Source: Mytilus edulis (lineage: Eukaryota). From it: a DNA stretch of 64,000 nt. The notes beneath the pieces were generated by a model, which was not told the DNA's origin, made no database searches, and worked only from the letters and a program-made list of their open reading frames with translations. Where the stretch lies: positions 67,208,001-67,272,000 of the forward strand of contig NC_092352.1 in assembly GCF_963676685.1 (NCBI RefSeq), given 5' to 3'. A program made the translations under genes and the position numbers. Position 1 is the first letter of the stretch, and each line of letters opens with the position of its first letter. Shown here piece after piece: positions 6,874 to 63,891 of this stretch.

Positions 6874-7376
6874 GTGAATACAGTGTGTCTGCAGGTGTTA
6901 AAAAGAATGCGGTTGTTTCGTTCTTCTTTTCCTTTGTTTTCTTATTTTTCACATTAATAAAGGGGTATGATGCAAAAACGGATGGAGTTTTAGACACTTT
7001 TACAATAGTTATCAAAGGTACCAGGATTATAATTTAATACGCCAGACGCGCGTTTCGTCTACATAAGACTCATCNNNNNNNNNNNNNNNNNNNNNNNNNN
7101 NNNNNNNNNNNNNNNNNNNNNNNNNNNNNNNNNNNNNNNNNNNNNNNNNNNNNNNNNNNNNNNNNNNNNNNNNNGTGAATACAGTGTGTCTGCAGGTGTT
7201 AAAAAAGAATGCGGTTGTTTCGTTCTTCTTTTCCTTTGTTTTCTTATTTTTCACATTAATAAAGGGGTATGATGCAAAAACGGATGGAGTTTTAGACACT
7301 TTTACAATAGTTATCAAAGGTACCAGGATTATAATTTAATACGCCAGACGCGCGTTTCGTCTACATAAGACTCATC
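6874..7376. other. Assembly gap (100 N, 7075-7174) with ~200 bp duplicated on both sides
   Basis: 6874-7074 is essentially identical to 7175-7376, which is typical of an unmerged contig overlap. Confidence 0.9.
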
Positions 7377-11954: not shown

Positions 11955-14900
11955 ATGGCCCAGGAACTTGTTTGCCTTTTGTCATTTACATTCGCCTTGG
12001 GATTACAAGTAAGTTTGGGAGAACATGCGAAAAAACGGCTGCTTTTAAACGATCCTGCCATTTTCAATTCTAGACTTGCAAAACTAGAATCTACTATTCA
12101 AAGCATGGACAAAGTAATCGAATCTATGAATAATACATTCAATGCTAAACTAAAGTCTATGGAATCTAGTTATCAGGCAAATCTTCAAACTAAAGTCAGA
12201 GACCATGAACGCCATATTCAGAATCTTACAAGTAGTCTATCGACATTACGGATTGGTATTGCGAATCAACAGAACACAATGACACAAATGTCACAATCGT
12301 TTCAAGGTCAGTATACATGTACACACTTCATAATTTATTTACCTGATAGAATAGTAAGGAGATAAGGACATGTCAGAGTTAGAAATCAAAGGAATGGAAA
12401 CACTTTATAAGAACTTCAAAGATTTACAAATATTAAGGTTCATTGTCTCTGAAGGAACGGTAATACATGGCTTGCATTTCTACCAGGTTTTCCGTAAAAG
12501 AGGATTGCAGCTTACTCGGGTTAGCATATTCTGTGTTACCAAGATCAAAATCTGCTTACCCTTCAGCAGCACATAAGTGTTGCTTAGTCTTCGTTTTCTA
12601 TGTAGTGTTTTGTGGACTTGTGTTCATCCTTCGCTTTTGTCACGGTTTTGTCCGTTGTTTCTCGTTAGTCTTGCGAGATTTGAATGTCCTCTTTGCATCT
12701 TCCGCCTCTTTTTTCAGCACACATTAAGTTGAAGTTTTACGAGAGGTGGCAAAACTTATTACTGCTGACTATTTCCGAAGACATGATATTTACCTCGTTT
12801 TTGATTTTTCCTTTGGTCTCGTTTCATTTAATCAAGACGTTTCTAGGTTCCCCCCCCCCCCCCCCCCCCCCCCCTCTACTATTCTGATTCGATCATTTTA
12901 CTTTTTTTCCGATTTAAACTTAACTATGAGATATCAAAGGTACAGTTAACCCAACTTGTTTTTTGTTTCGTTTTAGAGTTATTTGTCTTTTCATAAGAAT
13001 AATCATAAAAATATCCATTCCGCAGGAAGGTTAACATACTGCATGGCTTACCTCTTTCCGTCCGTCCGTTACATAACCGAAATTTAGTAGAAAGATTCAT
13101 TTGGTATCATTTTCATATTCATTGATCATCGAATTCCTACTTTTGAATATAACATTTATTTCATATATCCAGTAACAATCGAGGCTGTCTGATATTTGGG
13201 ATCAATCATTATGTAAGCATGCTATATAGATGTACAATGCGATGTGCTTTTACATGGACCGCTTATCAACTATCTGCGTACCGATTACTCATTGCAAGGA
13301 ATCATAAGTGAGCAATAGCTCTCAGTGCAACTTGTTCGGTAACCTTTTTGCCATGTATATCTTAATGTGTATCGACTAGTGATATTACAAATAAAAAGTA
13401 TTGTTTCTTTTTTTTTTTAAGAACGAGGTGCAACCTATGTGAGATGGGGCAAAACTGGATGTTCCGGTACTGGCACAAAACTAGTTTACTCTGGTAGGTG
13501 ATTTCAGTCACAATTACAGTTTAACTACAACATTTTTTAAACAGAAATCTGCACTGTTGTAAAAATAATAAACATAAGATGTTAAACTGACTGTAGAATG
13601 TTCAATCTAATTCAGTCTTTAGATTCTATATAACTTGGTTAATATCAATCTCAGACTGTAACCCAATAACAAAAGTATATCTATGTTAGAAACTAACGTT
13701 GAAATACATCTTTTAAGAATGCTAAACCATTCAAACTATTTTCATGCATGTGAAGGAATTAACTAGGGACGATCGAAGATAAACATCAAACTAATTTAAA
13801 AGCGGAATTGGTCAATGTCACTATTTATCGCGACTTTTAGTTGAAGTGGGCATTTTGACACTCAGAAGATGACTTCATATTGAAAGTATTTATCATCAGA
13901 GTATTATTCTGAGAAATAATTTATTGGTAAAGTAAATTGACATTTATATTGAACTTTTACAAATTGTACGTACTTTCAAACTGAAAATATGATTGATATG
14001 TACTTTAAATGATCAATTGACTTTTTCTGTTAATATAATATTTATTATTTAATCACGGCCGACACTCGGCTAACCGAGAGATTGGTCGGTTAATCTATAT
14101 TGAGTATGCGGTTATATCGGCGGTTGGTCTGTTAATCGGGTTGGCTAAAGTCTGTTAATCAGGTGTTATCGAGAAAATCATTGAAAGTTCAGCATGTTTC
14201 ATAGTATAACTTTCTAAATATATTTTCATCATAAAAAGTATTCATGTCTAACAAAACAATTCAATGTACTGAATTCAGTGGTGTAATTATTATTTTTCTA
14301 GCTTCGATGTATGATCTATAAAATGAAAAGGCGGGTTACTCATCAATAAATTTATACACATTTTACACACATAAAATGTAGACAAAATGACACATTGGTT
14401 AAATTTATTTGCATTCAATATTTTGAACATCGAAAAAAGAAAGGCATTATGTCTGTTAACCATATTGATATCATTGTGTGAAAAATCTACACGAAAATCT
14501 GTATTTTGGTGACATAAATCAATCTTTATTTAAAACCTGGTCTGTTAATGGGTCGGATGTATAAAACTCGGTCTGTTAATTGGTCTGTTAAGAGTTATGA
14601 ATGGCAATAAAAGTATAATTTTATTGCTATATGGGGTGTTATCGGATTAAATGAGTAGGCTCAAAAAGAGCGGCTAAAATATACGAAAACACCACATGAG
14701 CAATGAAACATAACATATACGGAAACAACACATGAAATTGAAAATTGATAAAAATGGTTTCATAAAGTGTAATATTAAAGTAATATTAATTCCATCCAAG
14801 AATGATCGCATATCATGTTGATTCTGCTTAATTGTCATGAATGACACAAATTTGTCATCTACATTGGTAACCAGTATATAAACCAGAGATAAACGTCGTA

Positions 14901-17075
14901 ATGTAACTAAACATCAGTAAGTAAAATATATTGGGATGACAAAATATGAAAAGAAAGAGAAAATAATGAGTAAGATAAATAAAATGTAGAAAAAAATGAC
15001 ATAACAATTTAAAGAATACAGAAATAAACAATACCCCCAATCCGGACCCTCATGGTATACACGAGCATCTGAATGGAAACGCAGAATATAGAATAGTATA
15101 GACAGTAGAGAGTATATACATTGCTAAAAACGAGAGAAAAATAATACTTGTTTAAGAATACACACATGAAACACCGATGGCTGTTGAAACAGTAACGGAT
15201 TGCGATATACTTATATTGGTGACAAATTCTAGAAGTTTACATGCGGACAACAATGGTGGCAGGTTAATGCCATTTTGCGTTTTAGCGTTAGCGTTTTCGC
15301 CTTACTTATTCTATATGGTGGAAACTCGAAATTGCGAAGTCGAAAACGCGAAAATGCGAAACCGATTTCTCGTTTCGACTTCGCGTTTTCGACTGTGCGA
15401 TTTCGCCTTTTCGTGATTTCGCGTTTTCGCCCTATAGAATATGAAAGGCGAAATCGCGAAAACGCGAAATGCACTTCACCGGCCACCATAGACAACTGTA
15501 GTTCTCCTCTGTACTTATGTAGAAAGGAACTAAACGGAATAAAATGAATTGAAACTTAAAATAACCAAATGTAGCTGCATTCGCTCCTTTCCGTTTACTT
15601 CTTTAGAGTGATTTGTGAACAACATATGATTTAAGTAATAGAAGAAAAGAACCAATTGGATGATGCTGACAAATTAGGGTTTAACGTCCAGTGACAAATA
15701 TCATGTTCATATGTGAACGAGAACACGTTATATGTACCCTGTGTTGTATTAGAAAGACACTTTCAGTCGGAATTGAGAACGTGCTACTTCGAACAGACAC
15801 AAAAATTATGGCTGATTGAAAACGTCAATAAAAAAATCATGCATATTCCAGAGGCCAATCCATATCACGCTATATTGAAGTGACACACCCTTCAATAAAA
15901 TTCAAAGAAAGTCCAAAAAAAAATACTCTTTCTAGGATACTGTCGCACCGTATTGTCATTTTTGTTTACTCAGGAACGTCTCATTCTTAAATTTTTCAAG
16001 GGGAAAATATAAAGGTAGCAAAATTATTGTCGTGGCTAAATAACTCTTAACTGACACAATTTCAATTGTCCAACCCATTAACAGACTTTATTCCAATAAT
16101 TTTCACTAAAACGTGGTATTATTCACGTTATTTTACAATTATGAAATATTTACTAATGTCAATTTATTTTTTAGAACCACAGTCCTGTTGTTTGTCCTTT
16201 AAATGATATCTAAATTTGTTTGTTTCACCTTTTATTAAAAAAATTGCTATGCGTATAAGCATAAATACTACATACTTGCGCTACGCCTTTTAGTTTTACT
16301 GAAAATTGCGCAGACTAAGAAATGTTTTTACAAGTGCAAAATGTTCTATGACAGATATCATTTTGTCAGACACTTTTCTTTTTTTTGATTTGGTTCTTAT
16401 AACATGCCAAAAATCTGTATATTTAATAGAGTTTAACATTAAATTATAAGCGTTTTACTCTTAACAGACGTATAACCAACCCGATTAACAGACCAATCGC
16501 CCATATAGCCGCATACTCAATATAGATTAACCGACCAATCTCTCGGTTAGCCGAGTGTCGGCCGTGTTAATAGTCAAGAGTTACCATACATTAAATTATT
16601 TGTAGGTTACTCATCTGGTCAAAAATTCTTCTATGGAAATGATTATTATCGAGGAGGCCCATCTAACATGCTATGTCTACCTGATCACCCCGAACTAAGT
16701 AACACTACTGCAGGTACCAATAGCTATATCTACGGATCAGAATATGACGATTCGCAGTTCGGGTCTGGTGCTCAAAATCAGGATGTGCCATGTGCCCTTT
16801 GTCTTAGCAATGCATCAACAACTGTAATGATTCCTGGAAGAAAGTCATGCTTCAGTGGTTGGAGAATAGAATACAGCGGATTTCTTGCATCTGGGGCTTA
16901 CCACCACGCGGCATCGTCTTTTGTCTGTATTGATAAACAGCCAGAGTTTATTCCTGGTGGACGAAGTGACAACAATGATAAAACACTTTTTATAACCGGC
17001 TACAAATGTGGATCACTCCCTTGTCCACCGTATACTGATGATTTGCAGGTGTATTGTGTTGTATGTTCAAAATGA
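11955..17075 (+). CDS. Secreted short-chain collagen C4-like protein (signal peptide, coiled coil, C4/NC1-like domain), 297 aa
   Basis: Exons 11955-12306, 13422-13493 and 16606-17075, all GT-AG and phase 1, total 894 nt. Signal peptide MAQELVCLLSFTFALGLQVSLG, then a heptad region, then family motifs GATYVRWGKTGC...LVYSG, GGPSNMLCLP, IYGSEY, DVPCALC, MIPGRKSC..GW..EYSGFL, CGSLPCPPY and CVVCSK*. Confidence 0.92.
14054..16566. mobile_element. 2.5-kb non-autonomous DNA transposon with ~95-bp TIRs (CACGGCCG...CGGCCGTG) and a 5-bp TSD (TTAAT), in intron 2 of the C4-like gene
   Basis: Near-perfect inverted termini. TTAAT at 14049-14053 and 16567-16571. Subterminal GGTCTGTTAA repeats. No transposase ORF. 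Confidence 0.9.
15252..15490. mobile_element. Palindromic MITE nested in the CACGG element
   Basis: Ends ATGGTGGCAGGTTAATGCCATTTTGCGTTTT and AAAACGCGAAATGCACTTCACCGGCCACCAT are imperfect inverted repeats, with internal GCGAAA/TTTCGC repeats. Confidence 0.7.
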
Positions 17076-22043: not shown

Positions 22044-25000
22044 TCACGTGTTTGTATCACTACGACAGTGGTCATATGTTTGATTGGTGATGTCTTCTTG
22101 ACTGTTGGTAAAAGTTTTATCATACATAAAATCAGCATTTCTATTGTATAAGCCTTGATGTTGATCGGGAAGATCCGCATGTCTTGAAATATCATACGAG
22201 TACTCGTCATCATCAGTAACATGTGAAGCTGTGTCGGAATCCTCTTTTGATATAGGTATCTCATAGTGATTGACACTATCATATTCTATCAAAGCAGTCG
22301 GAGAAGTATTACAGTTATTCACATAGGAATATGGATCCGGAGATAGCTCTGTATCTTTATCTGCTGTTCCGAAAACTGAATGATCAGGAGTACTACCATT
22401 GTGCTTCTGTGGAGTATCTTGTCGATGTGATAAACATGGAATGACAGCATCGGGATTCTCGTATGTTTTATTTGTCACAGTTTTGCAATTCAACTTGTCG
22501 TATGGCGTTCGAGGATGTGAAGCGTCTGCATCCGTATAGAGTGACCGACTGAGGATATTGTCACGGGCTTTTCTGAAATAACCATAATTACTAATTACTT
22601 TACCACTTACAATCACTATGATAAAATTCATATTTGATTTATATTTGTGACAGATTTAATGCTCGAAATGGTTAATAACAAAAGTATTTGTCAGTCACGT
22701 CGACAATCTTCGAAAATCAATATGACAATTTGACCTTCGTATCCCGAGCAGTGTCATTTAAAAATGATAAGCCACGGCAGTAATGTTTTTACTAAAAGTA
22801 AGGGAGGGTTCGGCGCGTCCAAACATGTTTAACATGACACACTCTGTATATGCCTGTTCCAAATCGATCCTCGCGTAGTTCAGTAGTTACCGGTCATTCC
22901 TGTATATCATATTTGTTTCTGGATTTTTTTTGTGTATATAGATCATTCTCTTGTTTAAATTATTAGGCATATGGGACCTTGATTATCTTGCGATGTGGTA
23001 GGCTATTGCCAACGGTTGAGGCATGGTGACCTATTGAAGATAACTTCAATTCATGTGGTATCTGGTCGAGACTTTTCTCATTGGCAAGCGTACCATATCT
23101 TTCAAGAAACATATCTTCGTAGTCTATTTAAATTGAAATTGAAGACATGTAGAAAGATGTCAAGTTGAGTAAGCAGGTGTATGTGACATGATACGTTTTG
23201 TTGAAATCTCAAATCTCAATGAAATATGCCACTCAAGTCATTTTATTTATACACTCCAAATAACTGGAAAATATATAATTACCTTTTGGCAAACCAGAAC
23301 ATTACTACGACAGCCGCAATAATTACGACAACTCCTGTCGTGACTCCAACAGAAACGCCTTTTGGAATGAAAAATGCAGATTTAATATTAATGATTAAAA
23401 TGATTGCCATCTTCTTTAGTATGATCCTTAAATTAAGACATTCATGTTTAGCACGATAGAATTGAGAACGAAAACGGTGAATGTATTAAAGACAATCCAA
23501 CCACATAGAGCAGAAAGCTACCCAAGGCCACCAATGAGTCTTCAATACAGCAAGAAAATCACACATTAGGAGGGGAGTTTTAGCTGGCCACTTGATTATT
23601 TAATCAGTCTAGATCAGCGAAAATAGACGTCATACAAAGACGAAACGAAATGAACCAAATAAATTAAAAGAAAACGCATACAAGACTTTTAAACAAATGT
23701 CAGAGTCTCTTGCGTTGTGACACGCACAAAAATGCAGCGGATTTAAACATGTTTTTGTGAGATCTCAACCCAACCCTACACCCAATGTAGAAGAAACAAT
23801 CACACAACAGTAACGCTTAGTTTACAAAAAGCTCTAGTCCGATGTTTGAAAAGGTAAGATAATAAACTTAGCAAAATGACAATGGTATATAGACAAACAC
23901 AGGACTACTAGCAGCTACGGGTTGACTTTCAGATCAAAATAATACAAACTTAATACACCAACTTAGTTCAAGACCCAAACGTCAAGTCTTTATCTGATTG
24001 TATAGTACTAGTGTAGCTTACCCTTTCTCCGGAAAGAGATCTCACTCTCACAGGACATTTTCCGACACTTCACCGATTATTTTTGCTCCTTATCTAAAGT
24101 GACGTTGATATCAGTTTTAAAGACATTGACACGATCAGGGATTGCAACCCACGGACTACCGCAACATTAGACGTCAGCTAACTTTCTTTTACAAATATGC
24201 AAGAGGTAAATGTTATACGGTAACCCTTCATTTTTCACATCTTATTATTGTATCATTGGCTATCATACAGCGATTTCCATACTCATAAAGAAGAGGAAGA
24301 ACTACAGCAGAAAAATAATCAGTAATTAGATAAGTTAGGTTTGGAATTTTTAACTTAAATAGAAAAAGAGGATTGAATTACAAAGGACTCGTTTGACCGG
24401 ATAATTAAAAAAATTACAGTACCTGCAACATTATATTCACTTTCCATTGAATGGGCATTTCGACTCTCTGTAATTGAATAATTAGTACATGTGACTTAAC
24501 TGAATTTTATACACTTAACATAAATACATATTATATCAAAAATGATATGGTTGATTTTTTATACTTGCTATAAAGGTGTCAAGAACTTCACATAATTCAT
24601 AACGAAATAAGCGGAAAATTTATTGACCTTACATGTGATTCGCTCCCTTATTGGTACATTTTTTTCTTTTCCTGTTTTCTATACTAAAAATAATTCTATG
24701 ATACACACATTTTTGGAGCAATTAAACTGCAGTTTTTTCGGTTGTATTCATTTTAAATTTAAATTTAAGAATTAAAATCCAAACTACATTATTGTTAAAC
24801 TAGCAAGGTAAATTCTAATAATTTAATTTTGGATGTAACGCGTATTCTGATTGGCTGACGTAATTTTGTTATCAGCCCATAGACATAATTTAGTCATGTG
24901 ACCGTGACGTAATCAACGTTTTTCGTGGTTTTCTACGGTTTAAAATGGAATTTAGAATTAAACTATAAGAAATGACTGTAATATTATTTCTGTCTATTCG

Positions 25001-32778: not shown

Positions 32779-35700
32779 TCAGTTTTTTGCTATATCGTAA
32801 TTGTCCTCTGTTGTCGGACCAAAGGCATGGTCATAAGTCTGATCGCTAATATTATTCTGTCTACTATGAGACGCACTGTCATAAACAGTGTCTACAGCTC
32901 TACTATATATGCCCTGCTGATGATCAGAGCAGTTATTTCCCCTTGAAACGTCATACTGGTTTTCATGAAATACATAATTGTCTTTTTCAGTCTCGTTCAT
33001 AGGTTTTGCCATTTCGTAGTTATTTTGTTTAGAATTTAGATTTGTTAATTCCATATTTGTTGAAATCTCCGAATTGCAGTTAGCTATGTTTTCATTTCCA
33101 ATGTGATCAGCGTTTACGTGGTGACGATCTATATTATGTTTGTCATCTGATTTTTTTCTGTAAAGGAAAAATGAAATGGTGAATTATGGAAAATAATCTT
33201 TCGACTAACTTGATTTTTAGCTAATGGTGAGTCCAATTTGCACTACACGCCCGGGCCCGTTCGTGTTTTTAATTTTAAGTTTGATACCTTTTATAAATTG
33301 TGCTCTCTTACTAATAAACTAATCAGAGACACCATGAAATTGAACTTTTGTATTTGAACCAGAAGTTTCGTCTACAAAAAAAAAACCTCATCAATGAGGC
33401 TCGAATACATAAAAGTTAAAAAGGCAAAATAAAGTACGAAGCTGAAGAGCATTGAGGACCGAATATAATTAAAACGTGTTAAAGTTTTGCCAAATACAGT
33501 TAAGGTAATCTATTCCTGAGGTAGACAAGCCTTAGCTTTTCAAAAATTAAAAGTTTTGTAAACAGTTCGCTCTCTTTTATATAGGATTTTTAAATGTCAT
33601 GAATAAATTGTATATTAACTAGTCAAACTTTCCATCCCATTTCTGTGTGTTCACGTTGTGAAACGTCTGAATTTGAATCCACCTTGTTTGATTTTTTTCC
33701 TGTCCAAATTATGATTAAATATTTTGCTAATTGACTGTAAAAACTTAAATTAATCATAGATTACTGAAAGTCGGTTCAATCAGTATACAAATCTGATCAA
33801 ATCTGGTATTAAGAATAGAAAGAACTGCCTGCAACATACACTATGTTAAATATTTTGTATCACGTAAATCAACTCTGTTCAGATTTCAATGCCTTATCCT
33901 CTCGTCACAACAAATATATTGTTCCAGCAAACAAAGCCTTAAATAATATTTGTATATGCATGTGGAATGTCTGAATAAAGAAATTGAAGTTTACAGCAAA
34001 ACTAAGAATCCCGCTTCCCACATATCCCTACATGATTAACGAGAGTGGCGATTTAAAAAAATCATAAATACATTCTTCTCTAATTTGCATTTGTAACTTT
34101 TTTTATTCGAGCGTCTCTGGTGAGTCTTTTGTAGAAAAAACACACGTCTGGCGCGAATATAAAATTTCAATTCTGCTATTCATAATAAGTTTTTTAGTCC
34201 TCAGCATTATGACATTTTGAATGAATGTGAAATTCAATCGCGGTTAATGCATACAAAGCAGGAGACGCTTACCCTGTCGACTCAACCGTTTCGCTACTTC
34301 CTGGGTTTATGTGATTTCCTTAGTTTTTGTTTACTATCTTAATTTGTCATTTAAAAAAATGAGAAAAAATCGTTATAATTCCACGTGCCAGAAGAGCTAG
34401 AGCGTGTCTGAATTTATATTTATTAGGAAGGTGTGATGCGTTAAATCTGAAAACAAGGCTGTATAAGAAATCAAAGCAGCTGGAGAGATATAGAAGTTTT
34501 TCTAAAAGATATTAAATCAGAATTTTTTTTTTCTGTCGCTTTAATTCATTAAGTCTGAATGAGAGGGAGACGAAAGATAACAAAGGGGTAATATTCAAAC
34601 TCATAAGTCGACAATAAACTTGCAATGTCATGGCTAAAAACTAAAAAAAACAAACAGACAAACAACAGTAAATAAAACACAACATAGAACACTATAACAG
34701 ACTGATACTTAAATGTACTTATCTCAGTTTTCCCTCCCTTTTTAATGCCGTACAGATGGATGATGCTTAAAACCTTTGATTATATAAAATATTTACCTTC
34801 TAACGAACCACAGATACGCTACGACGACTCCAATAATAATAAGTATCCCAACTATGACGCCTACAACAATACCTACATAACATGAAGTAAATTATGTTAT
34901 TCACAACAAAAATAGGCATCTTCTTATTTTAAAGCATTATATTCTTCCGCTGCCTCAAACCAGGTAGTCTTATATCGTATGGTTGAAATATAGATGACAA
35001 ATCATATACTGTGGATTTATTCATTTTCGTGTGATCAATTTTCGTGGATGGAGGAAAACTTGCATTTTTGTGGATATTTGATTTCGTGGTTTTGCCGATT
35101 TCTCTGAACAATTCAAATAGAAAAGTTGTAATTCGTTGAACATTATAGAATAGAAAAATAAAACAAAGAACTCTTGTAATTCTTAGCCAGATAAAACGTT
35201 ATTTTTATATTGTAATTTGTGTATCGTTTTAAATGAAATAGACAGAATGAGCTGGTTGTGCATACCTGCTACACCACTTTCAGTCTGCAATGGAAATGCA
35301 TTAGGAACTTCTGAAACAATATATAGTAAAAGCCATCAATTATTGATTGATTTTTTTTATCATCATAGATTCAATATAAGTAACTGCAGATTTAAATTAT
35401 TCATCACGAATAGAATAAAACTACTAATAATAAATTGTGTGTGTGTGTGTGGCAATTGTTTTATCATCTTGATTTTTAGTTACTGCTGAAGTTACACAAT
35501 GATGTGTGTGCTCCGTTAGTGTCTTCTTTTAGTTTTGTTGCACTTAAATTAGTTTCCTTAACATTTAAGTATAGCGTAAACAAGGAAGTTGAAGATTTAT
35601 CCAGAGACACGAGTCTTCGAACGTTCACATTTTGAATGAAGCACGGAAATAATTCAATTATTTAACATTGTTTGGTAATGTTTTGTTTAATTACTAGCGA

Positions 35701-44599: not shown

Positions 44600-46100
44600 T
44601 CCATAATTCCTTTGACAGTATTTGACATAACATTGCAGCATTTCCCTGTGTCTAAATAGTATATGATAAAAAAAATATTATGAAAACAATCTGCAGGTCT
44701 ACTATATATGCCCTGTTGATTATTAATACAACAATGTTTTTCTGTCATAATCCCTTATTCATTTATTGTATTATAATTTAATGAGTATGCTTATTCCAAT
44801 GTATTGGCATAATTAGTATGTACAAGTCAGTCTGTTTCGATGGGTTCTGGAACTATAGAATAATCTACCGTATTGGACAATGATCTCTATTTTTGTCTTC
44901 TAGCTCCAGTTTCAATGCTCGATTCTTCCTTATTGACTGTCATGTTCTTATTTGTTTTTTTAAAACTTATTCTTCTGTGTTATTTGGCACAGAATAACGT
45001 ATTCATGTTAACTATTTTTAATCGGGGGTTTTCAGTTATCTCGTTCTAGATAGTGGACAACATCTCATAGTTGGAGTCAAAAAGACTTGGGATGAATTCC
45101 GGTGCTAGCCAAATTTTCATCCTGTTTCCTAAAACTTTGATATAATTTATCAAAACTTTTCGAATCAAGATTTGTAGACAACATCTCATACTTCAAGTTG
45201 GAAGGATTAAACTTTTTTTATTGACTTTCAAAGTAATGTGAACATATGTGTTTAAAAAAGTTACCCGATGGATATGAACTGTTAAATAGATATATCAAAT
45301 GAAAAACTTTTAGTTTAATTTTGAAAGAATTGTGAACTTTTTTTATATCCTTTAACTTCTAATCTATAGATAATATTGCGTTCATCTGGAAATGCTGTTC
45401 TGTCATATCGCGGCTCTTTATAGATAGTTACCATACAGAGATTTTCCACACATTGACAATTGTAATAAAATATTGACCAGAAACTGTCATCCAAGGTGCA
45501 CAGGATATTTTTAGATTTTAATTAAAAAACAAATAACTACAAATATGTATGATTGATGATGTGGTTAGTTGGTTGTAGATTTTGTCATCACGGAAGATAC
45601 ACATATTTATGTCTTACGTTTTATTGTCAATTCAGAACTGACAAACTCAAATCAAATCCTTACGGTTTGATATGTCTGAAAATGACAACATTAGAAAAGA
45701 GGGACGAAAGATACCAAAGGGACAGTCAAACTCATAAATCTAAAACAAACTGACAACGCCATGGCTAAAAATGAAAAAGACAAACAGAAAAACAATAGTA
45801 CACATGACACAACATAGAAAACTAAAGAATAAAGAGTTGTACAAAATAGAATAGAGAGTTGTACAAAATAGAACGTAATACATCCCATTTCAACGTCGTA
45901 AGACATTTTCCTTTACAAGGAAGTTAATGGTTACCTATTCATGTCATAACAATAATACCAGTAGTAAAGTAGACAACATTATAACAATGTATAAATCAAT
46001 TCATAAAATTAAACGTGTAGATACGGATAAGATTTCTCTATAGTTTGTCTAAGTACTTTTGATATTTGTTTCGCTATGCTTTGTCATATCCACATTGTTC
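44600..46100 (-). pseudogene. Collapsed receptor pseudogene (D-type tail exon plus exon-1/promoter relic)
   Basis: Minus-strand fragments PSNLKYEMLSTNLDSKSFDKLYQSFRKQ, DSNYEMLST, TVNKEESSIETG..SLSNTVDYSIVPEP and QQGIYSRP, broken by stops and frameshifts. An exon-1-like MGCITFYFVQLSIL and the family promoter motif at 45908-45924 are present. No lectin or TM exons were found between them. Confidence 0.75.
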
Positions 46101-46992: not shown

Positions 46993-49900
46993 TCAGTGTT
47001 TTGCTATATCATAATCATCCTCTGTTGTCTGACCAAAGGCATGGTCGTACGTAAGATCGGTGATATTATTCTGTCTACTATGAGAAGCACTGTCATACAC
47101 AGTATCTACAGCTCTACTATATATGCCCTGCTTATAATCTGAGCCGTCATTTTTTCCTGAAACGTCATACTGATCTTCATTAAATGGATAATTGTCTTTT
47201 TCCAATGTTGGTGTATCTTTATCATATTTAGAATCCTTTATTGGTGTAGCCATTTCGTAGTTATATGCATTTAAATGCGTTACAGGACACCCAGCGTCCG
47301 AAGGTTCAAGCACTGTAGAATAGATCGCTAAATTGGAATATGGTCTTATTTGTCCGCTGATTCTGGTTTCGGAGTTTGATTCCTGGTCGTTGACCGTTTT
47401 GCCTTCATTTGTTCCATTATGATCATAGTTTCTTAGTTCATTTGTTGACATTTCAGAATTGCAGTTTGCAGGCATTGCTGTATTTTGATTGCCAATATAA
47501 TCATCACTTTTATCATGACAGTTAGCTATATTATGTATGTCATCTGTGCTTCTTCTGCAATAAAAAACAGAAATGTTTATATCAAGACTGTTTTGATTTA
47601 TTCGCAACTTATGAATCTTATGGACACAGGGCGTGCGCCTTTCTTGTATTTATTTATTAGTTTTTTTTACAATACAGTTCATTAAAACTAATACCAGAAA
47701 ATTATCAAGGGAAACATCTCTCTTCCTTTATACATGTTACATAAGTCTGACTAAATGTGATTCATAATTGTTTGATTTGTTTCTTGCTCTGAAATTGATC
47801 AAATAGTTTTCAATTTGCTGGTAAACAAACAAAAAACAATTACTCAAAGAAAAGTTGCTGAAAGTAAGTGCCTTGTCGAATAGTTTACAAATGATATTTC
47901 TCCAATATGATTTGGTCAAACCTTGTAGATAGTCAACGTTATAATATACGTATTACTGTTTTCTTTTCTATAAATCCGCGGATATTGGGTATGCTTACAA
48001 GCTTTGAGTACATTAAAGATTTACCTTCTAACAAACCACATGTACACTACGACGACTCCAACAATTGTAATCAGTCCAACTGAGACACCGACAGTAACAC
48101 CTACATAAAATAATATATATATGTATATCGAAATCCGGATCTGGTGTACAAAACATATTAACACCTTATGTTTGTGGCATAACATCGTGGCCACAAGTTA
48201 CTTGTTTTCTGTTTAGTATTAAATTTATATTAAGATCCATTTTGTTACATCTTGTGATCAATTTTATTTGGCAATCGCCAATGGCAGTCAGCAGGGTTAA
48301 AGAACATCAGTTGTTCGACCTGTTAGTCAAATGCGTTTTGTTTAAATATACTTTTTCACTTGTTTGGTCTTTTGGAAAATGTTGTTTGTGCTGTATTTAG
48401 ACCCTTCTACAACGAAATTTATTACAGATGCACTCGTATAAAAATTGCGGTTTTTATCCAACGCAATCATAGGTTTGAACGTAGTTTTCAATTTAGACTC
48501 GTTTATATATACATATCCGATGGATACATCTGTTGTAGAGTTGTCACTGACTCAGACGTACTTATAAATATAATTATTTTCTGTGACTGTATATTACATT
48601 AATTTGTAGGATCCTTTACTATAGATAATTTAGCTGATTTGTAACAATAATATCTTCATGCCTTATATATCATGTACTGTAGTACGCCGCTAGATTAAAA
48701 CTGACGAAGAAAGGAAACACACGGCCAGCGAAAGCTTTTTTTTTTAGAGCCCAGGTGGTCGTGTGGTCTAGCGGGACGGCTGCAGTGCAGGCGATTTGGT
48801 GTCACAATATCACAGTAGCATGGGTTCGAATCCCGGCGAGGGAAGAACCAAAAATTTGCGAAAGCAAATTTACAGATCTAACATTGTTGGGTTGATGTTT
48901 AGACGAGTTGTATATATATATATACAAGACTTATTGTCTTTTTATGTTGATTATTTTGTGATTCAGGTTGCTAACATAAGATTGACTTAAAGTGTTCGTT
49001 TGTAAAATTAATGACAGTCTTATTAGCTGTTAAACGTTTTCTGTGCAGACACATTTAAATGAACAATACAAAACATGCAAGAGAACATAGTTTATACTAT
49101 ATTTCATGGCTTAACATAATATGTTATTTTACAATCGATAATTTAGTACCATTTAAATAAACCTGACAGAAAGAATTGTCTATACATACCTTCTACGTTA
49201 CTTTCAACTTGCAATGGGAATACAGTAGGAACTTCAGTAAGATAATTTAATCAAAGTTAAAAATAAGAAATTATTCCAATATTTGTAATTATTTCTTTTT
49301 TGAACTTCAATATTAATGTAACAGATTTTTATTTTCAGTTATGAATAAAAGATTAAACTTAATTACAAATGTGTTACATAGCAAATATCCAAAGCAACGT
49401 TGTTTACTTCTATGTCATCTTGTCTATTGTAGAGAGTTGTTTCATTTACAAGCATAATACATCAGATTTTTTTTATATCATCAAAGGCCCGAAGTAAACT
49501 TGTACTCCAGAAACGTAAAATTTATTTACAATTTACCACTTATTCTATCGAAATATAAATGTTAATTACCAACTAGTAACTCCATCACCTACCATGCGAG
49601 TTTTTCCTCAATTTAAGCGTCACAATCGAATAAAGGACGCAATTATTAAAATTACAAATATTCTGACATATAAGGATATAATACGAAAACTTATCGGCCA
49701 ACCAAATCATGATACGAGAATGGCCGTTACATTTATGCAGTTTGCATTCCATTGATTCTTTTTCATTTTGGTCATTTTTGTGTAAGGACCACATCTCTGC
49801 GTATGACGTTCACATAGTGTTAGCATACACAAGTTGAAGCAGACATACTTGTGTCGGTTGTATTATTTATATGAATCTGCTTACTGTGATATATTAAATA

Positions 49901-52900
49901 CAAGCACTGCATGGGATAAAACACATACAACAATTCACTGAAGTTGGGTTACTTGAGCGACAGAAAATCATCTTTGTATCTGGAAATGAAACTTTCCAAG
50001 AGGATTTTTGTTTTCTTTTCTAGAAAGTTTTGTATGAATGCTACTTTATAAGAGTCAAAACAAAGTCAGTAATTAGGGTTCCACAAAAAGAAACCATTGA
50101 AATACCGAATCTAATCTTTCTATTAGGCAGGGAAGATAGTAAAGTAAATCGATGTAATATCTGTAAGTATTAATATGACTTTCTGCTGAATCAATTCTAT
50201 GCAACTGTTATTCAAAACTGGTATTTCGCAAACTGATGAATACGGCATCGTTTCAACTGACTTAATTTCAATTTTCCTGCTCGTACTGCCACATGCTATT
50301 GACTCCATTTTATAGGGACAAACTGTTTTTGGATTCTTTAGATTGTGGTTATTATTATTTGTACCTGTAATAGAATAATATGTATGTACGTAAATTTTCA
50401 GATTGTAAAACAGATTTAATTTCCCATATCAAATTCATTTTGTGGCATCAAGACTTACTTCCAATTCTAATGACATGAAATGAACGAAACACTATCAACT
50501 TTTCATGCGTCCGGACACTGTAGAGTTTTTGTTAGGTAACATCTTACCATATTCCTGTTGGCTATTTTTAAATATTTGTCAATTGAGTTTTTCAGACAGG
50601 TTTACACATTTATTTAGATTTATTTCTGCTCGATGTTTTGGTGTGGAAGGATTCAACACCCGTCAGATTATTAATATTTATTCAATTTAAGTTTAACCAA
50701 TGGTAGTTCTGCTGTTGTTTTATGTAGTTCGTGAATTATGAGATAAGTATTTTAATTATTACATTTTATTTATACTTTTACTGGTGCTTTTTTTTCTTAA
50801 TCATTCAGACTTCTGCCGACAAATATCCAAAATATGAAACGTATAATTTAGAAGACTTTGTAAACAGTTTTAAAGATATGAAAACATTTCTTTTTATTCC
50901 GGTATTTGCTTTTTAATAAAAACAAGCTAACTCATAGTAATAGCTTTTCTAAAAAAAAACATTAGCCGTCTCTTAGCTGATGAAAGTGGAAATTGTTCCC
51001 GCTTTGTAGATAAATTCATTCAGAATCGAATAGCCTTTCGTATAAATCAATCAATTTTACAAAAGACGTTATTTAGCAGTATACCGTTTAATGTTGGGTG
51101 TCAAAAATGTCCTTATCGTACGCATCCTTCAAAGCATAACATACTGAACTGACATGATATTGTGTGAGAGACCGTTCTTTTATAATGCCAACAGTTTTTT
51201 TGTATTTGAAATGTATGATTTACTTTTATTTCTATTTCTCTCATATAACATTATATTTATAGTAAAAAATGGTCAATAAACCTTAAAACAACTACTAGAA
51301 GTTTGATGTTGATCCTGCTCATTGTTTTAAGTAATGTTAATTTTTTTCTATTAAGATATTATTTTTTACATGTATTCACAACTCTTCTTTATATCATAGC
51401 TAGACTTGGGAGAATTAAAAGCTTAAAATACTGTAATGGCATCTCCATTTTAGAAGACCGTATGTTGAATTTTAGCAGTAAATTGTTTTGTATGTTGTTT
51501 AATTCGGTTGCTGCTGTCTTAATTAATTACGTATCCTTCATATCTCCTTAACACTCATTCATAGAAATTAAGCACTGCCAAAATATGATAGTTTACATGT
51601 ATAATTTGTTAATATTACTTTTACTGTTATGTCTGTTTTCTGTGATAGACATTTGACGTGACTCTGTACTTATGTATCTCATCATACTTTGAACCACACT
51701 ATTATTTTATTTATTATTATTACTTTTACTGTTAAGTCTGTTTTTGTTATATCTATTTTACGTGACTGTATTTATGTATCCCGTCATACTTTGAACGACA
51801 AAATTATTTCATGTCTACCTGTGCGAATTTCAAACGCGCAATTTTACACCAGTACTTAAAACCCTCCTTCCTTTATGGGTGCATTTTACATAGATAAATT
51901 AAATCGTATAATATAAACAAAATGAGGATGTTAAATTTGATGTATGCCTTTTTGTGCTTCTTCGTTACAATTGTTGTTTTATAATGATTTTACTTTTTTT
52001 TTGTAACATCGTTTGAGAGTAATTTTTGTGTTTTATTCTTCTATTCCCCTTTTGGATTTATTTGACGCGCTAGAGAGAGTTAGACAACGTTCAAACCAGC
52101 CCAAACTCTGTTCTAAAGATCAATGGTTTATCCGTGAGCAAATTAAAATTTTGCTTATCGATGTTTTTCAAACCTTTTTCGTATATCCTGTTTTTACCAG
52201 TATACGTATAGCGATAGTAGATCATAGTTAACTGCATATTGCTAGAAAACAAAACAATAGTCTTGTAATCGTTTAAAACCGTTTATAATGTATTACACAT
52301 AGACTAGAAATATGAATACAGGATTTGATCAATTAAAAAATGTTGAAATTATTCATTTGACACTTGATTTCTCTTTTTATGATTTCATAATTGCTTTTAG
52401 GGATTTACCTCGCCTTGGACCTTAAGTTTACACATGTAAGATATGCCTTGCAGAAATACACTTTCTTCCTGTGAATAATATATATCTAAACAGCTGTACT
52501 ATATCTTCATTAAAGTGTTTTAAATATTGATGAAGTCGCTTTGGAGGTTAAAGCCAATTTTTTAATTGAAGTACATTTATATATGTATTTACTTACGAAC
52601 ACAATAGTATTGTATAACTAGTTTCCACGTTTTCTCCGAACTTGAATTTGAAACATTGATCATTTTGTCTGTTAATACACACGAGTTGCGGCCAATACAA
52701 GACGGATAAGACGCTGAGTCCAAGGCTATCATGGTTTCTGTAAGAGCGTCATCTGTTGTACTGCAAGCATCATGCACTTCATGAATTGTAATGTTAATAT
52801 CGTGTATTGTGTTCCCAACTGTACAATTAAGTTCCGTTTGAGAATTTCCACTCCCCAATCTCTCACAGGATAGCCCTTCAATTAAACAAATCAACATATT

Positions 52901-60560: not shown

Positions 60561-61856
60561 TAACGCAACGTATTATAAACATTGTATCTGGATTAGTTTT
60601 TACAAACACCGGGTCGATGCTAATAGTGGTTTAGACATGTTAATGAATGCAGGATATATGTGTAATCATTGTTATCATGGTTATCATATGCAACCGACTG
60701 AGTTATATTTTTAATTATTTTCAGATATTAATTTGTTCATGTTTATTTTTAACCGAATGCATGATCACGGATCAAATACAAATGCTGATGCACTCAAATG
60801 GCAAGCGATGCATACACAACAGGGTATACTCACTCTGTTGATGCTCATTGCCTGGTTTTGTTAAGAGTTCATGCGATTCCCACAGTATTTGTGTGTTGCC
60901 TGAATTTGTTTTCCTGAATCTGTAAAATATTTGCGATATTTGAACATGGTCGTCATTATGCGTTGATTTGCCTATCTAGAACATCAGGTTCACCAATGAC
61001 AACGAAAATGTTCCAATTGTCGTAACAAATAATCATGTCCTCTTTTTCCGAATTTGACCTACCTTATCGGACTTATTACGAATTGTATATTTACATGAGT
61101 AACACGAAATGTGCTACATGCAGACTTACCCTACTAGATCTCTTACTGAAGCCATCCCTGTTCGAGGTGGGTTCATGTTGTCCAGTCTTTAATTTCTTTT
61201 AATCCACCATTTTCTACATTTGAAAATGCCTGTACCAAGTCAGGAATATGACAGTTCTTGTCCATTCGTTTTTGATGCGTTTTGTTTTTTGATTTTGCCA
61301 TGTGATTATGGACTTTTCAAATTGATTTTCCTCTGAGTTCAGTATTTTTGTGATTTTACTTTTTTTTCAAATATTGTGTATTTTGGTGAACTGTTGTGTG
61401 GCTTTTTGGTCTATAATTTTTTTTTCTTTTTTTCTTTTTTCTGTTGCGTTGACAGTTAATTGTAACGTTTTAGTACGAATGGTCCTTTGTAATCTTTTGC
61501 CTCACTTTGCGAATTCTGAAGGTACTAAAGTGGAGAAATACTTTCGTAATCTATCATTAAAACTTCCGATTATGACTTTAAGTTTAACAATGTCAGAGAA
61601 ATCATTCAATATCCTTCATATTTTGCCTACCACTTAACAATCATACCTGATTTTGGAAATCGCAAAAATAAAAACCACGAGGAGTCGTTGCAGTTTACAA
61701 TACAATACAAGAAAATAAAAATTGAGGTAAACAAAAACCAAAAACAACCTGGTATTATCATGTCCTGCGGACGAAAACGTATATATTGTGCCATTAAGAG
61801 GCACCCGTGGTACATATGTGTGATAGTTATCAAAAGTACCAGGATTATAATTTTAT

Positions 61857-61900
61857 ACGCCAGACGCGCGTTTCGTCTACATAAGACTCATCAGTGACGC
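61857..61900 (-). ncRNA. Minimal hammerhead ribozyme, family 1 (intact)
   Basis: GCGTCA CTGATGA GTC-TTATGTA-GAC GAAA CGCGCG TC TGGCGT. Mutated or partial copies at ~7039-7074, 7341-7381, 27385-27425, 34110-34155, 43555-43595 and 63581-63597. Confidence 0.78.
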
Positions 61901-62810
61901 TCGAATGATAAACAGCATTCGTAGTCAAAGTGAGACAACATAACGGATTGCGGCTTCGACAATTGTAAAAATACATCGCAATCAGAAATGATAAATCATA
62001 AGTCGACGAAAAGCAGACACAACCATGGCTGAAACGAAATGACAAACAGCATCCTACGAAACATATCCAAAGTTATATGTTACAGAAAAATAAAAAATAA
62101 AAAGCAATCCCTCTAAGACTTAATATAATGTTTTCATTCGGAGCTTTCGGTTTATTAGCCTCATTGTTAGCAGCAACACTTAAACAAGGAAAGCATAATT
62201 AATGTGCAAGCAACTAAGGTACAATTTAGTCGATAAGTATACCGCATACCGTCTCTGCTCAAATTTTGAAAAAATAATAAATTTCTGGATGTAACTAAAG
62301 TTACGAAGCCGATTTAAGAACAAACTTAGTACCATTTATATAAATTTCGATTGATTAAAACAGTTCAACGTAGTCATTGAATACGGGTTTTTTTTTATTG
62401 AGAGAACACAATCTGTATATCAGAACGTAAAGGCAAGCTGTAACAAATATGGTTATTCTATGTTATAAGCACATGTTTACGTCGAAAGATATAAAATATA
62501 CATTTTCGTATGTCTGATCAATGACATAGAATTATGGTGTAATATGAGTGTCAATGACACAACATACCACCCAAGTCACACGTTACTTTGGGAAGGTCTG
62601 CAATCCAAACAATATAAAGGTCTATTGAAATTGATGTCCTGCTGTTTATCAGGGCAGATTTTCCACAAAACATCTAATTGGTCTTTATTGAATGCAACAT
62701 TTTTATTTCGGATTCATTTTCTAAATTATCCATTTCATTTTCATTATGATGGTTTGCCATTCCGTATGCAGCGAATTATGATGCTGTACAGGACGGTCCG
62801 TTCCGTTTTG

Positions 62811-63891
62811 CTAAAGAACTGTAAAATAATTAGCAGAATTTGATAATGAACTCTGTGTATGTTCTCTGATTCCAATTCCAATGTTTGATTCTACGTGATT
62901 GACTGTTTGGTCCTCATTTTCCTTTTTAGATTTATTTTGTTGGGTTACTGGACAAGGAATAATGTATTCATTTTCCATTTCTTTGTTGTTTATGTCTGGT
63001 TGATCTCGACTGGGTTGTTTCCTAAAATCTTGCTTTAATTCGTCATAGCTTCTTGATTCTTGATCTGTTGTCAATATCTCATAGTTGGAGTCCGAAGGAA
63101 TTGCAGTGTTTTTATTTCCAATGCTATATTTGTTTTCATCTCGTTTATTAGTTGTGTTTTGTTCGTCATCTGACACTTTTCTACAGTAAAACAAAACAAA
63201 TGATTCAAGTACTCTATCAATAAAATACAATGGATGATTCACTAGGTTAAAAATAGGATAACAAATTGGGAAGTACTGCAAGAAAATGACTTTAGTCAAA
63301 TCTAAGGCATGGCAATACTTACTCTTTCTCTATCCCTTCCTCAGCTATAATGTTATGTGAAGATAATAGAATAGTCGTTAATGCTTATAATGGTAAGGGA
63401 TTTACAAAATTATCTTTTACAAATGACGTTACCTTCTAACAAACAGTATATACACCACAATGACGCCGACAATTGTAATAAGTCCAACTGTAACACCTAC
63501 TGCTACACCTGAATAAAATTGAAATCAAGTTAATAAATAAACTCATCATAAATACCAGGACGAAATTTTTTATATACGATACGCCAGACGCGCGTTCATT
63601 GAATGTTAGCTTCATTCTATGTTATCCATAATGATGGTATCTATTGATAATAATTCTAGTAATAATTTCACCGTTAACATGTTTAAATCACAAAACCAAT
63701 CCGCATCGTCAAAGATATGCTAAGAAATAGTTGAATGTATAAAAGAAAATTAATACACAAATGTTATTTTCTCTTTAAAAGAAATGTTTGTTTGTTTTAT
63801 TCATCTGACAAAATCTGTTTAATGATCATGGCAGAGTTATACTTACTTACTACATTTGTTTCCTCTGATAACGAAACATCCGGAGAAATTG
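62811..63891 (-). CDS. Receptor D (3' part; 5' exons outside the window) with an ITAM-bearing, shortened tail
   Basis: Exons: 63847-63891 (45-nt stalk), 63433-63508 (76-nt TM, VAVGVTVGLITIVGVIVVYILFVRR) and 62811-63180 (tail with DSNYEILTTDQESRSYDEL, ending ANYFTVL*). Confidence 0.82.

Follow-up and report, generated by a model that had tools for sequence, protein, structure and literature searches.

The 64,000-nucleotide window of Mytilus edulis DNA analysed here (C9:67208001-67272000) contains four members, A, B, C and D, of a group of five tandem minus-strand genes, the fifth, E, lying beyond it. Each gene has its own transmembrane exon, and the cluster also holds one decayed copy of a tail exon and one relic exon fragment. 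The cytoplasmic tail of gene D carries two tyrosines spaced as in ITAMs (immunoreceptor tyrosine-based activation motifs), and this cassette is conserved within the genus. From the exon structure, the conservation of the cassette and a mosaic of tails and ectodomains across the family, we consider the chances to be even that D is an ITAM-type receptor, in a family with two classes of tail, that would signal through a tandem-SH2 kinase. Features of the family are on the minus strand throughout.

RefSeq has two models of gene D, both placed on this contig: isoform X1 (P0023, 383 aa) and isoform X2 (P0007, XP_071130892.1, 381 aa), of which the latter maps to six minus-strand exons at 96-100% identity. 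Here and below, comparisons over the full length rest on database proteins such as P0007, and A, B, C and E are compared through translations of single exons; D exon coordinates above 64000 lie past the end of the window and were read from adjoining DNA. Mapping of P0007 places the signal peptide exon at 75336-75268, that of SUEL-like domain 1 at 69730-69449 and that of SUEL-like domain 2 at 67598-67290, all in this extended numbering. Within the window follow the stalk exon (AISPDVSLSEETNVV, 63847-63891, residues 219-233 of P0007), the transmembrane exon (S-VAVGVTVGLITIVGVIVVYILFVR-R, 63433-63508, its AG acceptor and GT donor both seen) and the last coding exon (62811-63180), which encodes a cytoplasmic tail of 122 residues (260-381 of P0007). 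These three exons have AG acceptors and GT donors and join in the correct phases; the tail exon has an acceptor (...ctgtag) directly on its 5' side and ends with the stop codon TAG at 62811-62813. In an independent M. edulis assembly the tail, that of P0003, is 100% identical. The topology read from the sequence comprises a signal-like N-terminal helix, a Cys-rich ectodomain, a hydrophobic helix with RRK after it and, last, the tail; a helix is predicted at residues 239-264, and the membrane helix contains no charged residue at all. Database names of relatives include 'SUEL-type lectin domain-containing'. Judged by its sequence, D encodes a type I membrane protein, intact and restricted to Mytilus, whose parts run from a signal peptide through two degenerate SUEL-lectin-like domains and a short stalk to a single helix and an acidic tail. 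The intron between its stalk and transmembrane exons includes, at 63529-63596, a dispersed repeat of about 65 bp with dozens of matches on many chromosomes at 83-91% identity.

The cassette itself, DSNYEILTTDQESRSYDEL, occupies positions 63036-63092, with its tyrosine codons at 63081-63083 and 63045-63047. Beginning with DSNYEIL and ending with YDEL, it fits the pattern (D/E)xxYxx(L/I)-x6-8-Yxx(L/I) exactly, with a spacer of eight residues. A preliminary description of this DNA had proposed a D/ExxYxxL-x6-8-YxxL ITAM here, and translation of the minus strand bears out both the string and its position. To gauge how readily such a match arises by chance, every tail was put through 20,000 shuffles of its residues. 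The loose pattern Yxx[LI]-x6-8-Yxx[LI] occurred in 0.4% of the D-tail shuffles (P = 0.004) and the strict pattern, with an acidic residue at position -3, in 0.08% (P = 0.0008). Over all five tails together the probabilities add up to approximately 0.07 (loose) and 0.011 (strict).

Relatives were sought with two word searches, one using the tail exon and the other P0003, and with HMMER against 1.84 billion representative proteins. Two proteins from the HMMER search, P0005 and P0006, were discarded as unrelated repeat proteins, and a search of the ESM Atlas with the D tail returned as its single result a mollusc cluster without a name. Retention of the motif in relatives had been put forward as a check on the preliminary description, and the cassette is indeed kept in all eight Mytilus sequences that cover both sites: P0007, P0003 and P0013 from M. 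edulis; P0008/P0025, P0010, P0011 and P0001 from M. galloprovincialis; and P0009 from M. californianus. These share NYE[I/M]LT[T/A]DQES[R/K]SYD[E/K]L, in which the length of the spacer is invariant. Among the seven non-identical D-type tails, pairwise identity is 93% in the cassette against 76% elsewhere, and the cassette ranks first for conservation among 108 sliding windows of 16 residues. The M. trossulus model P0002 begins at the Met of YEML, so that its first cassette tyrosine is unseen.

The remaining tyrosines of the tail are conserved too. All five are invariant in D-type tails, compared with 51% of columns overall (P about 0.03), the three outside the cassette lying in KYSIG, EYIIP and YFxVL. 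The second of these belongs to a YIIP motif (NEYIIPCPV; 62955-62966) whose Tyr and Pro do not vary across D-type tails (11 of 11), and which we take to resemble the PLC-gamma SH2 site of the PDGF receptor, a resemblance that serves as a lead and not as a test. The last, YFTVL (62814-62828), is a YxxV motif at the very C-terminus, with counterparts in C-type tails (YSTVLEP) and in the decayed copy (VDYSIVPEP). D and P0025 stop directly after YFTVL, while the paralogues P0001, P0002, P0009 and P0011 continue past this point for about 30 residues with EPNGTD...YEMA. A reading of this early termination as a pseudogenising lesion was dismissed, since YF[K/T]VL is also where P0025/P0008 of M. galloprovincialis and P0013 of M. 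edulis end; being common to the orthologue P0025 and to P0013, the stop is a lineage feature and no lesion. Taken at the level of sequence, then, the D cassette YE[I/M]L-x8-YD[E/K]L is best described as a selected tyrosine-based signalling cassette of ITAM type.

By analogy with known ITAM receptors we infer for D a ligand, phosphorylation, recruitment of a kinase and an activating sign of signalling. Clustering driven by the ligand would lead a Src-family kinase to phosphorylate both tyrosines of the cassette, on which a Syk/Shark-type kinase would then dock by its tandem SH2 domains. An activating output would follow, for example phagocytosis or a response of ERK type, as reported for CgIgR and CgSyk in the oyster. 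Part of the machinery of tyrosine-based signalling was located in the genome. An orthologue of the phosphatase SHP2 (PTPN11/corkscrew) lies at C13:58.01 Mb (L027:1385-8988, minus strand), one exon of which matches human SHP2 structures with E = 1e-43. By match coordinates, two stretches matching SH2 domains lie ahead of kinase exons at C1:124225547-124233884, a candidate locus for a tandem-SH2 kinase. A pair of complete Csk-like SH2 exons, 1.1 kb apart (L026:6678-6986 and L026:7847-8068, both minus strand), is found at C4:54.61 Mb, upstream of exons for a tyrosine kinase; the two may be spliced in a mutually exclusive way or belong to a tandem-SH2 Csk-like kinase.

Several results weigh against reading D as an ITAM receptor. 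No Syk/Shark gene was located in this genome from the lists of match coordinates for SH2 and tyrosine-kinase domains. Neither the word searches nor HMMER against the 1.84 billion representatives yielded a D-type tail outside Mytilus, and conservation of the cassette is only genus-deep. Among the relatives, the assembled fragment P0004 has YDEF at the second cassette site, the acidic residue at position -3 is replaced by Lys or Asn in two sequences, and in the M. coruscus model P0014 the membrane exon is joined straight to QHSSRDQ, skipping the cassette altogether. YxxL, moreover, doubles as a generic YxxPhi sorting signal. As regards the ectodomain, the best scores against the SUEL-type lectin domain (PF02140) were 13.8-25.1 bits, the Pfam cut-off being 31.4, and an AlphaFold2 model of P0007 built on a 13-row alignment had a pLDDT (predicted local distance difference test) of 31 and no usable fold.

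At the joining point of P0014 the M. edulis sequence has an internal in-frame AG at 63022-63023 (gattttag|g, minus strand), just past the cassette, although as an acceptor it looks weak. Splicing of the transmembrane exon of D to this AG would drop the juxtamembrane segment together with the cassette, and an ITAM-less form of D is conceivable because the AG sits exactly at the P0014 junction.

The chief rival explanation is that the YxxL motifs of D are YxxPhi sorting signals, recognised by the mu2 subunit of AP-2, in an endocytic lectin-like receptor concerned with uptake or recycling, so that the ITAM spacing would be incidental. YEIL, YDEL and YFTV each fit YxxPhi, and the cassette is surrounded by an acidic cluster (TTDQESRS), as in many trafficking signals; but YxxPhi appears in 61% of D-tail shuffles, and the sorting match therefore explains little alone. 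A lectin-like ectodomain suits such a receptor and the conservation of the tail suits it equally well, except that all eight full sequences combine exact x8 spacing with Leu at +3, neither of which sorting signals need. Nor need sorting and signalling exclude each other, known ITAM receptors combining them. The present data cannot separate the two, and we consider a purely sorting role rather unlikely. A chance match is a somewhat weaker candidate still. In this case the cassette would have arisen in a fast-evolving, disordered, tyrosine-bearing tail and its apparent conservation would reflect how little the Mytilus species and paralogues have diverged. Relatives of the tail within one genus only, and a family-wise chance of about 7% that any of the five tails bears a loose ITAM, speak for this reading. 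Against it, the strict pattern has P = 0.0008, every tyrosine is invariant, and pairwise identity has fallen to 76% in the rest of the tail but is still 93% in the cassette, first of the 108 windows. Exceptions to the cassette can be cited in favour of chance, namely P0014, the YDEF of P0004 and the FDKL of the decayed local copy, yet the only copy in which the second tyrosine has been lost to FDKL is a pseudogene with stop codons. We regard chance as unlikely.

The preliminary description had gone further in proposing that D, acting through Syk/Shark, and A, acting through SHP phosphatases, form an activating and inhibitory pair with homologous ectodomains, A contributing an immunoreceptor tyrosine-based inhibition motif (ITIM), IEYDSV, and a TPYDKL resembling an immunoreceptor tyrosine-based switch motif (ITSM). 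Both strings are present in the A tail exon (22044-22580, the 5' limit being approximate since the acceptor is not fixed), at 22272-22289 and 22491-22508 respectively, and the strings of D and A alike sit in cytoplasmic tails of neighbouring family members. Their interpretation fares less well. IEYDSV fits the ITIM pattern (S/I/V/L)xYxx(I/V/L), but so do sequences in 27% of A-tail shuffles (P = 0.27), and the sole relative found for the A tail, P0022, reads IEYDNP despite being 92% identical, two of the few differences between them falling on positions +2 and +3 of the putative motif; no paralogue of the A tail was found outside the cluster. Conservation of the ITIM, a further check suggested for this model, was thus not observed, and a functional ITIM in A loses support because of the chance level and of the IEYDNP in P0022. 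As for TPYDKL, its Leu at +3 does not fit TxYxx(V/I), a pattern with zero matches in the five tails. The A tail instead aligns with those of B, C and E, whose common pattern QG[I/L]Y.R..D..YD...TYDH we term the YD-ladder, and is a divergent member of that class. The A ectodomain is likewise the most divergent of the family, its SUEL-like domain 1 being about 42% identical to that of D and other members and lying on a long branch of the tree. The genome does encode the SHP2 orthologue noted above, and ITIM-phosphatase signalling exists in the oyster (PMC11841013). Even so, a role for A as an ITIM/ITSM inhibitory partner of D is not supported by its sequence, and we consider the pair as originally proposed to be improbable.

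The idea of neighbouring genes that combine similar ectodomains with different tails does hold, for C and D. Their shared DNA extends over approximately 3 kb at 90% identity (D 69797-66872, C 52945-49890) and takes in the exons of the two SUEL-like domains with their intervening intron. SUEL-like domain 1 is 88-90% identical between the two genes and the transmembrane exons 80%, whereas the tail exons cannot be aligned. The closer pair is therefore not A and D but C-type and D-type tails on ectodomains about 90% identical. Scored on a tree of SUEL-like domain 1, the history of tail type needs at least four changes, and two well-supported clades (100/99 and 98/96) each mix both tail types. In its ectodomain exon, B matches at 100% identity the model P0013, which comes from another M. 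edulis assembly and bears a D-type tail; the P0013 model may be chimeric, and that of P0010 clearly is. The two tail classes, one of ITAM type and the other a YD-ladder devoid of ITIMs, have been recombined with near-identical ectodomains through duplication, gene conversion or exon replacement.

A relic of a SUEL-like domain 1 exon (GLIIESLLCENSDVELNCPVENVIDDINIVI), truncated and 31 residues long, was noted in the first intron of D (L012:641-733, corresponding to 72641-72733 in the extended numbering, minus strand). It is nearest to M. californianus and M. coruscus ectodomains that bear D-type tails, with 23 of 29 residues identical, against 18 of 31 for the exon of D itself. This greater proximity hints that the ectodomain of D was replaced during its history.

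An architecture of similar ectodomains on alternative tails resembles that of paired receptors, as far as sequence goes. Of the arrangement originally put forward, the part that survives is the combination of similar ectodomains and different tails; between A and D the identity is only about 42%, and an ITIM-bearing partner was not found. Polarity between activating and inhibitory members is unsupported because C-type tails carry no inhibitory motif: in nine of ten aligned YD-ladder tails (A-type and C-type, from four species) ITIM, ITSM and ITAM are absent, and the tenth, P0015, has one non-conserved match, SPYYNL. That the family is a true paired-receptor system, arisen independently of the vertebrate ones, in which near-identical ectodomains, held alike through gene conversion or exon replacement, are borne either on ITAM tails for Syk-type activation or on YD-ladder tails with a different and possibly opposing output, is in our view doubtful.

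The YD-ladder tails of B and C were said in the preliminary description to have lost the first tyrosine of the ITAM, and both strings on which this was based are confirmed, NCNSEIST at 33058-33081 in the short tail exon of B (32779-33159) and NCNSEMST at 47443-47466 in that of C (46993-47556). The tail of C reads NSEMSTNELRNYDH at the ITAM position, with Ser in place of the first Tyr and a spacer two residues shorter, and Ser occupies this position in every C-type tail. Upstream, the exon for SUEL-like domain 1 of C (52598-52879) encodes a protein sequence 88% identical to that of D, and the exon for SUEL-like domain 2 (50177-50332) is truncated. In comparison with D, a deletion of 247 bp (region 50126-50428, minus strand) has taken the second half of this exon along with its donor, and the exon ends abruptly after IELIQQKV. 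Gene C, to judge from this lesion, is probably defective in this assembly.

The decayed tail copy (44689-45222) lies 1.8 kb downstream of the C stop codon and is interrupted by several stop codons. Its D-type part, DNA 45222-44819, comprises YEMLSTNLDSKSFDKL and a duplicated YEML piece, and is followed at 44723-44689 by a short YD-ladder piece, QQGIYSR. VDYSIV (44851-44868) and the doubled YEML (45179-45190 and 45058-45069) are present as had been described. At the second cassette site the copy has FDKL, the second tyrosine being lost. With a Tyr-bearing cassette of ITAM type and a YD-ladder piece together, the copy could go back to a dual tail in an ancestor or be what remains of alternative last exons. 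A layout like that of the decayed copy next to C is hinted at in M. trossulus, where the C-type gene LOC134726822 and LOC134726823, an open-frame fragment of a D-type tail, have adjoining numbers.

ITAM-Syk signalling is a core logic of vertebrate immune receptors; to our knowledge it has been demonstrated for only a few invertebrate receptors. As in the vertebrate KIR, Ly49, SIRP and PIR/LILR families, the mussel genes adjoin one another and combine near-identical ectodomains with unrelated tails, and the likeness of C and D reaches into their introns, as it does in those families, consistent with conversion or recent copying. Differences are nevertheless evident. The non-ITAM partner in mussel is without an ITIM, any opposite signalling is putative and C is damaged in this assembly; D bears the ITAM itself and has no charged transmembrane residue for DAP12 or FcR-gamma; and the mussel ectodomains are lectin-like rather than of Ig or C-type lectin type. 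Dectin-1, CLEC-2 and Draper are phagocytic or innate immune receptors that recognise glycans or particles. Dectin-1 and CLEC-2, with their (hem)ITAMs, and Drosophila Draper, with its ITAM and Shark, are like D in coupling a recognition ectodomain directly to a tyrosine motif for a tandem-SH2 kinase, a coupling that is predicted for D. Dectin-1, however, has type II topology and just one YxxL, in contrast to the type I topology, canonical x8 spacing and SUEL-like domains of D, while Draper has EGF repeats and YxxI-x11-YxxL spacing.

Closer at hand are two oyster receptors. CgIgR of Crassostrea gigas has a classical ITAM, co-precipitates with CgSyk and acts upstream of ERK (PMC6994640). It is, like D, a bivalve single-pass receptor with an ITAM in its own tail (EGDYTELGQCDPETPYEKL, compared with DSNYEILTTDQESRSYDEL in D), and its output of Syk-ERK type is that proposed for D. 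Unlike D, it has five Ig domains in place of two SUEL-lectin-like ones, no sequence homology between the two being detected, and its association with Syk is experimental where that of D would be predicted. CgNCAM1, with two ITIMs and experimental binding of SHIP2, is an inhibitory receptor (PMC11841013) and exemplifies in a bivalve the role earlier assigned to A, in which there is one chance-level, non-conserved match. The earlier statement that paired logic is poorly documented in molluscs accordingly needs to be narrowed: ITAM-Syk (PMC6994640) and ITIM-SHIP2 (PMC11841013) signalling are both known in oyster, though not as pairs.

ITAM-type and ITIM-type receptors were already known in bivalves; what is new here is a lectin-like family peculiar to Mytilus, bearing no annotation beyond 'uncharacterized', with a demonstrably conserved ITAM cassette, and the mosaic of two tail classes across shared ectodomains. 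D places a genus-conserved ITAM-type cassette on a tandemly duplicated, structurally variable lectin-like mussel receptor whose ectodomains are re-used with ITIM-free tails. This offers a testable case both for the wiring of recognition to tyrosine-kinase signalling in invertebrates and for the question of whether the architecture of paired receptors evolves by convergence. The example of A also counsels caution, in that single ITIM-like strings in tyrosine-rich tails are not to be taken as inhibitory motifs.

Elsewhere in the window, long open frames at 11955-12365 and 16668-17075 on the plus strand belong to a gene unrelated to the receptors. One of them encodes a signal peptide and a coiled-coil stretch and the other a Cys-rich C-terminal domain (GSLPCPPY...CVVCSK); neither had a Pfam match over threshold. 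There is an assembly gap (a run of N) at 7075-7174. The open reading frames at 7027-7317 and 61845-62045 end alike in DESYVDETRVWRIKL, another repeated element.

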